NCBI GenBank assembly: GCA_001179505.1
Contig: CDMY01000557.1
Span: 1 to 51,940 of the forward strand
DNA length: 51,940 nt
Source of the DNA: Vitrella brassicaformis CCMP3155
Lineage: Eukaryota; Protista; Chromerida
Reading direction: 5' to 3'
Shown here: one piece after another, positions 3,152-12,603 of the stretch
Layout of the letters: each line of letters opens with the position of its first letter
Numbering within the stretch: position 1 is the first letter of the stretch
Program-made: the position numbers and the translations under genes
Notes under the pieces: generated by a model
Databases searched by the model: none
What the model was told of the DNA's origin: nothing
Seen by the model: the letters and a program-made list of their open reading frames with translations, nothing else

Positions 3152-7990
<4,839 letters not shown>

Positions 7991-8610
7991 CGCTCTCGCC
8001 CCGACGCACCGGGAGCCTCAATTGCTGCGGCGGATGCCGATTGGACGATGCCGCTCTCGCGCGCAGTGAGACATACTGCTTCCGCCTCCTGTTACCCGCT
8101 GTTCTCGCGATTTCCTTGCCCACCGGGATCACATGGACTTGGTCTCCCTTCAGATCACGCCCATCTTCGAATTCACTCCACCGAGTTCGCAAACAATCGC
8201 GAGCTTAGCTCGCAAACCTTCATGAAGGCTCCTGAGGCTTGTGGGACACAGGCAGCTTGTGTGGATTCACTGCGGAAGAGCGACGGTGGAATCAGGCCAT
8301 GAGGCGCATTCTCTGGTAAGGACGCAGTCATGAGAGGGATGCAGGCCAGGCCCTGTACGTGTGTGTTCCCGCTTGTCCTGTCCTGCAGATGTCCCCGTGG
8401 CCGAGCAGAGACCACGAGACCACCAGCGGGGTTGTTGAAGCAGGTGTCAAGTGGGCCTGGAGGCAGGTAAGAGCAACACACAACGATTTGGGGGTGAGCA
8501 AGGGCGCCATCTGTCTGTTCTGCGTGCTTTCAGGCATCTGTCGACCACCATTGACCACGCCAGCGTGTTTGTCCTGTTTTCGCTGAATCACGCGCGTGAG
8601 CATCTGGCAG

Positions 8611-10346
8611 ATGGGTTCGCGAGCCAGGGTGCCCGAAGAGGAGGCATTCTCCACCGAGGCCCTGAAGTGCTCTGTGTTTCGTTCGTGCGCACCGGTAAGC
8701 CGCCGAGCGACCAGCAAGTGTGATGTGCCGACCCCCCTGCCCTGAGCTAGTTATCGGTGTGTGATTTGTGTGATTGCTTATTTGATTTGATTGTCCACCA
8801 GGTGTTGTCATCGATGGGCATCGATGACGAAGTGCTGGACAGCAAGTACCACAAGTGCTACTGTGACAAGTGCTGCCGGGCCAGGGGCGAGCGCAAGGGC
8901 ATCTACTACACCCGGTGAGCGAGCGGCCACACAGCCATACACACCACACACACCACACACACCACACACGCCCCTCAATGATTCTTTCGTCCACCCCATT
9001 CCCATTATTCTTAACCCAGAGGGACCCCCCCGACGATGTACGCCCTTCCCTTTGGTTGGTGTCGCTTCGCCCTTCGGCTGAGCCAGGACGAGCTGGACAA
9101 GTTCCGCACCTGGAACGTGTCCTTCCACGGCACACACAAGGACAGCGTCCGCGGCATCGTCCGCGACAGGCGGCTGCGGGTGCCCGACAACAAGTCCATC
9201 TTCATCCGGGACGGCCACCTGCCCGACCAGTTCTACTACTTCACCACACCCTCCGTCGTCTACGCGTCCTTCGGGCTGTATGCCGAACCCTTCGAAGTGA
9301 GGGAGGGGGGATGCACACACACACACGCAGACAGACAGACACACAGGCTGACTTGTCTATATGTGGCCTGGTGTGGTGTGGTGGTTGCGTTGGTTGGATG
9401 GATTGCAGCACGACGGTCAGCTGTGGCAGGTGCTGGTGCAGCTGCTGCAGCGGCCCGGCAGCTTCGAAAAGGGCTTCGAGACGTCGGGACTGGGTACGGC
9501 AGGCAGGCAGGCAGGCAGACCAGATGGCAAGACAACGCGATATGTGCCTGCATCCATCCATTTCTCCACCTGTCTGTCTGTGTGTCTGTCTGTCTGTGTG
9601 TGTGTGTGTCAGGTATGATCCACCTGGACCCCGGTTTCCCCAACCACGAGGTGGAGTGGAAGTCGAATGTGGACGGTGCGGCGGTGGTGTACGCCGTGCT
9701 GGTGCGTCCCATCCCCAACAGGGAGCCCGAGGGGCTGGTCTACCCACACGGCACCTTCTTCAGAATACGCAACTACTCCTGGTACCAGCCCTTCGACGGA
9801 TCGCCGCCATTCTTCCCCTCCAGCCAGCTGTTCAACAACACCAGCAGTGGCCAGGGGGGGAGCAGCAGCAGTGGCAGCAGCAGCAGGGGGGCAGGTGCTG
9901 CTGCGCGGGGCGGGCAGCTCACACAGCAGCTGATTAGGGTGAGTGAAGACGTCATGGGGTCGCACCAGGCCCCTCACCCGCACCCACACCACAGTGCCGC
10001 TGTGCCAGCATCCCCGGTCCCCTCGGCCCCCTCCGCCCCTCAGCTGGGCAGCGGCTCACTGTCGAATGCGCAGAACGGCCGTCCCACCCTCCCTCATCAC
10101 TCGTACGTTGTGAGTGGACACCACCACCACCAGCCCGCCCCCTCCTCACACCCACCACCTCATGTGCCGCCACTTTGGCCACATGTGGCGGGCCAGCCGC
10201 CCCCATTGTACTACTATCCCCCTCCTGCTGCCGCTGCTGCTGCTGGTGGTGGTGGAGCACCCTCCCTCCCCCATATGTCGATGCCGGCCAACGTGGTGAC
10301 GGTGCCGCCCGGGAGCACCGTGTGGATCATGCACACGGGCCGGTAG
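8611..10346 (+). CDS. Stand-alone NEURL4-C-terminal-like ADP-ribosyltransferase-fold protein with His/Pro-rich tail
   Basis: Spliced product: KCYCDKCCRARGERKGIYYTR|GDPPTMYALPFGWCRFALRL...WNVSFHGT...FYYFTTPSVVYAS..YAEPFE|HDGQLWQVLVQLLQRPGSFEKGFETSGL|GMIHLDPGFPNHEVEWKSNVDGAAVVYAVLVR. This matches, from memory, the NEURL4 C-terminal ART pattern. Introns ~8695-8801, ~8915-9019, 9297-9408, 9494-9612. The start codon is uncertain. Confidence 0.8.
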
Positions 10347-10829
10347 CACAGGGGGGTATGGGGGCGGGCGGGGCAAGTTTTCCCTGCAGACAGGTCCCTC
10401 GCGGCTGAGGCACATGGAATGGATGTGTCCATCCATCCATCCGTCGATCCATCCATCTGTGTGTCTGCCTGTGTGTGGTTGAGATGGCGGGGTGGAGAGG
10501 ACTTGCTGGCCGACTGAGTGATTTTGTTTGTAGTTGCTCGTGTGAGTGAGTGCTTTTTCCTGTGTGTGGTACCGATGGCTGGCGCGATAAGGACAGATGG
10601 ATGAATGGATCGATAGACAACAGTGACTGATCTGTGAGAGAGAAAGCTGTGTGTGTGAATGAATGCTCGAATGTTCACACAGAAATGGTCCCATCAGCGA
10701 GTCACGGCAGATCAATCAGCTGCATGCATCGAGTGTCACAGACTGGCTGAGCAGCAGCTGCTCTGGCAGCTGGCAAGGCAACTCTGTCTCTCTGAAACAG
10801 ATGTGCTCCACCGGGTAGGGTAGGGTAGG

Positions 10830-12603
10830 CTACACCGACCCCCCAGCACCTGCAAACATCAGTGCAGCATACCACACAGGAAATGATGCCGCCGCCTCTC
10901 CCTTCCCCAAGCGCCCCCCCTCACCCAGCGAACGAGGCAATCCGAGGACTGCCTGCTCTAGCTCATGTGTTGCCAGCAGAGGTCGGGCGGCCGCCACAGC
11001 AGCTGGGAAGCGCTCGATGTCCGTGTTGCCCTTAATCGGGGCCTCGGTCGTGTAGAGGTGGATGTTGCCACTGCCAATCCGCATCCAAGCTTCGATGGTG
11101 TCGGTCGCTGCGGTGCCCTTGAAGATGATGAGTCGCTCGCGGCCGTCATCTCCCTGGCCTGGCGGCTCACCCATATAGTCGACGGTCTTGTAGCCCTCGA
11201 TGGGCTCCGTCAGCAGGGACAGATAGCGAGTGTCGTCAAGGCCGACACGAGCACCCGTCACACGCTTCTGCTCAACGCCCTCTTGACGACACCAGTACAT
11301 CAGGACCATCCGCTCGATGAATGCCGTGAAGGATGGGAAGAAAAAGTCCCTCCTCCGAATGGGCGGGTCGACGGCACTGTATGCGCTGCGGTAGGGGTAG
11401 GCGGGGGGCAGATCGGTGAGGGGGAGCGTCGTGAATTCGACATCGCCGATTCTGTAGCGCTGTCTCGTCACACCACCACCGCCATCGCCCTGCTGCCCTC
11501 TGTCCTCATCTTCATCACTGCTTGCCCCCTCCATGTCCTCATCGTCGCCATCACTGTCGCTGTCCTGATCGCCGTCATCTCCCTCCACCCGCCGCAGCTC
11601 TAAGGTGGTCCCTTGGTGATGGAGCAAGTGGCCGAATGTGTTGTAGATGGCCAGGGCGAGAGGCAGCTCATCGAAGGCCGCCTTGGTGGCCAGATGGTCG
11701 GCCATCCACTGAGGCGACAGCATCAGAGGCAGGGGCAGTGCCTTGATGAGCTTGTAGATGGCCGCCACACGAATGAATTCGGCCATCTCCCGCCACACAT
11801 GACCTCCTTGCTCGAGCACATAGGCGCACTTGCTGAAGTACTGGAATGTCGGCCGATAGACGTCGATGAGGCCGCTGAGGTGATTGCTGTCGAGCGAGCA
11901 GTCGACGCGCTTGAGCATGAAGGCCTCGTTGATGAGTTGTGTGCCGTAGTGGGTGTTGGTTGCACGCGCCGGGCTAATGGCCACGTCGACAGGGAGGTAG
12001 CCCACCACACCGTCACAGAACACATCGGACGGCAGCCGGTTGGCCGTCACGTCCACGGCAGTGTCTGGTTGGCAGGGGGGAGGGGGCGGGGCGGCAGAGA
12101 TGTGGTGGGTGATGGTGGCCACGGCAGCGGAGAGGGTCGACACGCTCGACTTGACAGATGACCACTCATGGGCAATGACGGACGCCTGAAGCCATCACAC
12201 AGACGACAGATAAGGCGGAATGTGTTGAGCCGCCCCCCTCACTGTGTCTGTGTGACTCACCTGGTCGTCGGTAATGGACGGCATTATCAGCGGGTCGACG
12301 GCCGACACCTCAGTGGCCATCTGACACACACACAGAGCAGACACACCACGGCTGCATCCCCCAGTGGGTCGATGTCTGTGTGTCACCCACCTGCTGAATG
12401 AGTGAGTGAATGGCCGCCAGCCGACCACAGACATCACCCGACCCCACACACACAGGGGGGGACGCCTGCACACACAGTGAGGCACTCTCAGTGAGACTCA
12501 GCCATTCCCACGGTGATGTGTGGTGCCGCACTGCCTCCCTCACCGATGCTGCTTGACTGTGCCCCTCCTGCCGCTGGTGGTGGTGAGCGGCTGTGCCATT
12601 CAT
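10830..12603 (-). CDS. Lineage-specific expanded-family gene, copy B (intact paralogue of copy A)
   Basis: A 437-aa open main exon (10830-12143) plus upstream exons and introns collinear with copy A. Acidic D/E linker in the middle. A probable extra intron near the 3' end. Confidence 0.8.

Follow-up and report, generated by a model that had tools for sequence, protein, structure and literature searches.

An expressed gene for a stand-alone member of the NEURL4-type ADP-ribosyltransferase family in the chromerid Vitrella brassicaformis

Described NEURL4-type proteins and the relatives of the Vitrella gene

The NEURL4-type ADP-ribosyltransferase (ART) family is said to have been defined by de Souza and Aravind in 2012, in the H-Y-[EDQ] clade. 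A family set published in 2021 (PMC7955679), which was assembled with JackHMMER, starting from a choanoflagellate seed, includes members from Babesia, Theileria, Emiliania, Guillardia, ciliates, Dictyostelium, fungi and animals, as well as four other Vitrella proteins. The Cryptosporidium protein of 361 aa (C. parvum EAK88145.1 / Q5CRZ3) is short and stand-alone, as is that of the Vitrella gene described here, and its homologues are known in C. hominis, C. tyzzeri, C. meleagridis and C. ryanae. EAK88145.1 carries the GenBank name [quoted passage not shown]. Both the family and stand-alone forms of it in protists had thus been recorded before, the Cryptosporidium form under this name, and apicomplexan and other Vitrella members in the 2021 set.

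The analyzed window comprises 51,940 nucleotides of V. brassicaformis CCMP3155 (contig CDMY01000557.1), in which an earlier note, made from the letters alone, had placed a NEURL4-type ART with a candidate H-Y-E triad and without neuralized repeats at positions 8611-9760. The locus is expressed and spliced and encodes a stand-alone member of the NEURL4-type ART family whose catalytic His and Glu are intact. It is likely that the 430-residue product is composed of a Cys cluster, an ART domain, a hairpin common to the alveolate proteins and a low-complexity tail, and its predicted activity is NAD+-dependent ADP-ribosyl transfer. All six motifs listed in the note were recovered in the exon-by-exon translation, namely, CYCDKC in exon 2, YALPFGWCRFAL, FHGT and YYFTTPS in exon 3, QRPGSF in exon 4, and DPGFPNHEVEW in exon 5. 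The signature motifs PxGWxRF, [FY]HGT, [FY]xSPSxxYA, QxP and ExEW and a hydrophobic last strand are found in this order in the Vitrella protein.

Similarity searches were run with single exons or with the natural stop-free stretch window:9021-9812, not with the joined spliced protein. In this stretch, exons 3 and 5 share one frame and the intervening intron is translated as filler. The exhaustive phmmer search of 1.84 billion representative proteins yielded 189 relatives at E<=1e-3; 29 of these reached E<=1e-10, and 6 reached E<=1e-30. In every case, the best stretch fell within exon 3 or exon 5 and not within the intron filler. The similarity of the predicted ART protein to these relatives is far beyond chance. 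The closest relative was P0001, a 536-aa product of an MMETSP protist transcript (64% identical, E 4.6e-51). Its identity with the Vitrella protein was 58-67% in exons 3-5 and 37-38% in exon 2. Two Cryptosporidium proteins, P0003 (325 aa) and P0004 (361 aa, the cluster of EAK88145.1), matched with E of 1e-37 and 3e-35, respectively, and P0007 is a relative from the apicomplexan Cardiosporidium. P0004 contains the exact string of the entry “NEURL4||Q5CRZ3_CRYPI/102-244” of the published family set, and the peptides of the present Vitrella gene are absent from that set (PMC7955679).

As for the animal proteins, the Pfam Neuralized domain (PF07177) was detected in 11 of the 28 long phmmer matches. 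One of them, P0052, a lizard (Phrynosoma) “NHR domain-containing protein”, has six Pfam Neuralized repeats followed by the NEURL4-type domain, and matched the Vitrella query directly in the whole-library phmmer search (E 1.3e-7). In pairwise comparison with P0052, exon 3 showed 41% identity over 63 aa, including YALPFGWCRF, which is nearly letter for letter the same in both, and exon 5 showed 50% over 28 aa (E 7e-14 and 4e-8). Animal NEURL4 and the Vitrella protein also have in common HGT/HGS, PGSF/PGSY, E-x-E-W and the upstream C..C...CxCxxC cluster. The assignment to the NEURL4 type was therefore borne out by significant similarity to the C-terminal domain of proteins with NHR repeats and the NEURL4 layout. 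In contrast to the Vitrella protein, animal NEURL4 has six NHR repeats ahead of the domain and long inserts within it.

Profile searches were less informative. Pfam found nothing significant in any exon or in the read-through ORF, nor in nine close homologues, and in particular no match to PF00644, the PARP catalytic profile, in the Vitrella exons or these homologues. The N-terminal neuralized repeats that would mark an orthologue of NEURL4 were likewise not seen in any exon, in line with the note. Neither the ORF nor the family profile found a match among PDB sequences. For exon 3, the language-model features indicated PARP clusters with high confidence. No identical protein was present among the representatives searched with phmmer, and word-index searches found no identical protein of 145-763 aa; since the latter also missed the Cryptosporidium orthologue, although it has a few 5-mers in common with the Vitrella protein, their blank results say nothing on absence. 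With the present analysis, a Vitrella gene that these protein searches did not find in public collections has received a domain assignment that is confident and a gene model that is validated.

Gene structure, transcript and neighbouring ORFs

The NEURL4-type ART gene has five coding exons on the + strand of the window at 8611-10346 (8611-8694, 8802-8914, 9020-9296, 9409-9493 and 9613-10343), which comprise 1290 nt, or 430 codons, followed by the stop TAG at 10344-10346. Two non-coding exons on the same strand precede them. The first (8228-8315) is where the RNA contigs of runs X1 and X2 begin (8228/8231), and the second (8389-8466) was delimited by a spliced X2 contig and GT-AG sites. The start-codon exon (8534-8694) contains an in-frame TGA (8584-8586), the ATG at 8611, 28 codons and the first two Cys of the cluster (CSVFRSC). 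Coding exon 2 (8802-8914) carries CYCDKCC of the cluster and the strand leading into the ART core, and coding exon 3 (9020-9296) carries PFGWCRFAL, FHGT with the catalytic His, DGHLP and YYFTTPSVVYA, in which the triad aromatic residue is Phe. The long central strand WQVLVQLLQRPGSF and ETSGL are encoded by coding exon 4 (9409-9493). The first part of coding exon 5 (9613-9812) encodes NHEVEW, whose second E is the catalytic one, the last ART strand VVYAVLV and the hairpin ending in WYQPFDGSPPF; the rest (9813-10346) encodes a low-complexity tail of 177 residues and the stop codon.

The model was compared with contigs from four public runs (X1, X2, X3 and X5), which were placed on window 7600-10900. 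In both X1 and X2, the contigs skip precisely the predicted introns at every junction. Their spliced pieces are 8231-8314, 8388-8463, 8531-8693, 8801-8913, 9019-9296, 9409-9496 and 9618-9853, where the offsets of a few bases from the exon borders reflect alignment ambiguity at the junctions. All six transcript introns have GT-AG borders. In X3 and X5, the contigs over the gene correspond to unspliced genomic DNA with the introns kept; X1 and X2 are therefore RNA runs, and they show that the gene is expressed, with the splicing that had been predicted. The end at 9760 proposed in the note had to be moved, since it falls within exon 5 and the frame continues unspliced to the TAG: region 9892-10367 is covered by one contiguous RNA contig of X1. 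This contig also excludes introns at the GT-like sites 9930 and 10110 of the tail. P, S, A, G and H are abundant in the tail, which the note had described as His/Pro; from this composition, the disorder that the note ascribed to the tail is probable.

According to these data, the observed transcript cannot encode upstream NHR repeats, since its leader is spliced and non-coding and the in-frame TGA lies 24 nt 5′ of the ATG in the same exon. An N-terminal extension or NHR exons were thus excluded, and the absence of neuralized repeats claimed in the note was confirmed at the transcript level. A wrong gene model or a pseudogene, in which the frames would be open by chance in GC-rich DNA or further NHR exons would lie upstream in a longer protein, would in principle agree with the many long spurious ORFs that the GC-rich sequence produces on both strands, and with the lack of an identical protein in the searches above. 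Against this stand the spliced RNA contigs of two runs, which fit every predicted junction, the upstream TGA, and the homologues, with which the exons align in order and gap-free at the splice junctions, with E values down to that of P0001. For the isoform seen, this reading is refuted, and overall it has hardly any probability left.

Several features of the leader and introns were also recorded. The ATG at 8299 in the first non-coding exon opens a uORF of 5 codons whose stop is created across the splice junction, and the ATG at 8389 in the second opens a uORF of 32 codons that ends in the next exon (read by hand over the junction). N-myristoylation at MGSRAR was considered and dismissed by eye, because residue 6 is Arg. 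Microsatellites of the (CA)n and (GACA)n/(CAGG)n types and GCA/GCT runs occur at 8936-8974, 9310-9350, 9495-9617, 9854-9891 and 10220-10254, in introns 2-4 and in the coding tail; mapped reads pile up there to depths hundreds of times greater and give many spurious “joints”, and joints at these places are to be ignored. In the relative P0005 (143 aa), the predicted protein turns to junk after ...LYASPF, which is the site of Vitrella intron 3, and the genome of this relative probably has an intron at the same position. No paralogue of the ART gene was found in the 52-kb window by tblastn with each exon.

The ART gene is flanked by two ORFs on the - strand. The head-to-head neighbour at 6932-7990 encodes a divergent protein kinase (Pfam Pkinase, 1.4e-17) and starts about 240 bp from the RNA 5′ end of the ART gene, so that the two may share a bidirectional promoter; no RNA contigs of X1 or X2 were found over the kinase ORF within 7600-7990. 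The convergent ORF at 10830-12143 encodes 437 aa with an acidic Asp/Glu/Ser-rich stretch and has no Pfam match. RNA contigs at 10367-10850 may represent the 3′ UTR of the ART gene or that of the convergent ORF. Neither the kinase nor the ORF without a family match gave a functional clue for the ART gene.

Predicted fold and catalytic residues

An alignment of 94 domain segments and the four Vitrella exon pieces (A1) was used to fold residues 57-283 of P0001. The AlphaFold model has a mean pLDDT of 96.0 and a pTM of 0.92. In a Foldseek search of the PDB with this model, the best 50 matches were all PARP ART domains, and the top match was PARP4 (8swy_A, E 5.6e-6), with probability at its maximum. 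VIA-align gave 338 chains at Z>=8, and all matches listed were PARP catalytic domains. For the canonical PARPs (PARP10, PARP14, PARP15, PARP16 and PARP4; PF00644), which have the ART fold, Z was 10-11.6 and rmsd 3.3-3.8 Å over approximately 125-139 residues for most listed rows, PARP10 giving Z 11.6 and rmsd 3.3 Å over 136 residues. The ART fold proposed in the note is thereby supported by way of the nearest homologue: it is P0001, 64% identical, and not the Vitrella protein itself, that was modeled as PARP-like, and the Vitrella domain is predicted to have the same fold. The likeness to the PARP family is one of fold only, because no PF00644 or PDB sequence match was obtained. In both the PARPs and the Vitrella family, a His ends the first core strand ahead of a helix, the next core strand carries an aromatic residue, and a Glu stands at the start of a late strand. 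The Vitrella family differs from PARPs in having its own motifs (PxGWxRF, SPSxxYA and ExEW) and a Cys-cluster cap and in lacking the PARP helical regulatory domain.

The H-Y-E triad suggested in the note was upheld in its first and last members. In the family alignment, the column of the FHGT His contains His in 88 of the 94 relatives, and in the P0001 model this residue ends the core strand before the helix, as in PARPs. The second Glu of EVEW, at the start of the late strand, is Glu in 93/94. The middle position of the triad is occupied in Vitrella by Phe of YYF-TT rather than by Tyr. This residue lies two positions before the near-invariant SP/TP, in a column that contains an aromatic residue in 86 of the 94 relatives (F 56, Y 30). 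The second Tyr of YYF, beside the Phe, belongs to a mostly aliphatic column (I 43, V 19, F 15, Y 7) and probably faces the core, and the first Tyr falls in a variable column. Consequently, the Vitrella triad reads as a predicted H-F-E.

In human NEURL4, Leu occupies the place of the Vitrella Phe, the triad being listed as H-L-E (PMC7955679, Table 1). The alignment thus indicates a middle position that varies within the family, so that Phe is not disqualifying. The Glu site of human NEURL4 is ELEW, and mutation of HGS and ELEW led to loss of the in vitro activity (Cardamone et al. 2022, PMC8932523). By analogy, we infer that the Vitrella protein binds NAD+ and transfers ADP-ribose: NAD+ would be held by the His of FHGT and the Phe of YYF-TT, and the second Glu of EVEW would transfer ADP-ribose to the substrate, as reported for the C-terminal domain of human NEURL4. 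As the Glu is retained, the Vitrella protein might also elongate chains, although PARP3 and PARP4, which are H-Y-E enzymes, can be mono-transferases.

The replacement of the canonical Tyr by Phe could also be read as a sign that the protein is a pseudoenzyme or only reads NAD+ or ADP-ribose, for which TASOR and some PARPs offer proposed precedents, and that it would act as a scaffold through the low-complexity tail. In agreement with this, assays have been confined to human NEURL4, with no stand-alone member among them, and part of the field words even that activity cautiously, as one that “has been suggested” (PMC9027952). In addition, the Foldseek similarity to PARP1 is lower for NEURL4 than for canonical PARPs (PMC10450202). 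However, the near-invariance of the His and Glu extends across very distant eukaryotes and many domain contexts, as expected from selection on catalysis. In ART active sites, Phe can stack on nicotinamide as Tyr does, which further weakens the argument from the middle position. Since mutation of the same motifs abolished the activity of human NEURL4 in vitro (PMC8932523), loss of catalysis in the Vitrella protein is regarded as unlikely.

An active ART could also act on something other than a protein, either the end of a nucleic acid or a small molecule; such substrates are known for some PARP-like and other ARTs. Human NEURL4 has been reported to be DNA-activated and to interact with mtDNA (PMC8932523), and reviews describe the modification of nucleic acids by some PARPs and bacterial ARTs. 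In contrast, no recognisable nucleic-acid-binding domain was detected by Pfam in the Vitrella protein, and this alternative seems quite improbable, less so only than an error in the gene model. The preferred reading therefore remains that of a stand-alone NEURL4-type ART with predicted transferase activity.

Cysteine cluster, alveolate hairpin and domain contexts

The region of 70 residues upstream of PxGW was aligned for 97 relatives. A family-wide cluster of the form C-x5-C-x20-C-x-C-x2-C-[H/C] was revealed. Its first column contains Cys in 87/97 relatives and the second, after five residues, in 57/97; the third, 20 residues further on, contains Cys in 88/97, the fourth, after one residue, in 82/97, and the fifth, after two residues, in 83/97. 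The adjacent sixth column holds His in 39 and Cys in 4 of the 97. In Vitrella, all six positions are Cys, distributed between CSVFRSC in exon 1 and CYCDKCC in exon 2. The CYCxxC that the note had read as a putative zinc-binding element is therefore present, not as a private add-on, but as a part of this family-wide cluster. Its estimate of about 40 residues upstream was also roughly right, CYC starting at residue 47, whereas the conserved module begins at approximately residue 19; as the cluster starts in exon 1, the 46 residues before CYC are no free leader.

Among the relatives with the cluster are P0052, the lizard protein with six NHR repeats, and the family members fused to Macro/WWE, LRR or kinase domains. 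The extended model of residues 38-290 of P0001 has a mean pLDDT of 92.9, with values of 96-98 in the region of the cluster. The cluster is probably a structural zinc site capping the ART domain. The published family boundaries begin at PxGW, so the cluster lies outside them (PMC7955679). It may matter for catalytic fragments of NEURL4, since constructs starting at PxGW would cut it off.

A second feature lies at the other end of the domain. The C-terminal extension RxIPNxEP..YPxGT[FY]F...W[YF]QP[FY]DGxxPF (window 9700-9812; residues 250-283 of P0001) is common to the alveolate proteins only and forms a confident beta-hairpin in the P0001 models. A quick maximum-likelihood tree was constructed from 92 columns of exon 3 only, too few for the deeper branching. 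In this tree, the Vitrella protein grouped with the alveolate hairpin proteins with an SH-aLRT of 97, apart from the NHR-fused animal set, which formed a separate clade. The Cryptosporidium proteins belong to the same clade as that of Vitrella and show 44-48% identity to it over the matched parts (E 1e-35 to 1e-37). Both have the same order of elements: a Cys-containing lead-in, PxGW, [FY]HGT, FT[ST]PS..YASFGLY, QxP, ETSGLG, E[LV]EWKS and the hairpin W[YF]QP[FY]DG. In the lead-in, the Cryptosporidium Cys pattern is degenerate (TCCRDHC / TCNRIEC) as compared with CYCxxCC of Vitrella, and the long His/Pro tail of Vitrella is absent from Cryptosporidium. On sequence grounds, Cryptosporidium and other apicomplexans have kept a protein of which the Vitrella protein is the chromerid orthologue.

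Chromerids and apicomplexan parasites thus have in common a stand-alone NEURL4-type ART in which the catalytic His and Glu are preserved, and a free-living, culturable relative is now available in which to ask what the role of this enzyme is in Cryptosporidium and piroplasms. Possibly new are the Cys cap found across the family and the hairpin confined to the alveolate proteins. A broader proposal can be put forward tentatively, and we hold it to be rather doubtful: the cluster would be an undescribed zinc-binding cap integral to NEURL4-type ARTs, including vertebrate NEURL4, and the alveolate orthogroup with its private hairpin would represent an ancient ADP-ribosylation writer that has been preserved both in free-living chromerids and in reduced parasites like Cryptosporidium.

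The domain partners found among the relatives were diverse. Besides NHR repeats, they include SPRY+NHR+ARM, LRR+ZU5, kinase+thioredoxin, three Macro+WWE (PARP14-like) and Mind-bomb SH3 repeats, and further clusters, containing ubiquitin, ankyrin or TLD domains, came from shape matching in the ESM Atlas. Examples are P0041 of a hemichordate (1963 aa), P0019 of amphioxus, and P0064 and P0016 of Gefionella. One of these has a PARP14-like layout with RRM/KH, three Macro domains and WWE and ends in a NEURL4-type ART, a PF00644 match not being reported for it. In others, the NEURL4-type ART is joined to LRR, to LRR+ZU5 or, in a malawimonad, to a kinase and thioredoxin domains. The NEURL4-type ART is thus widely shuffled among domain contexts.
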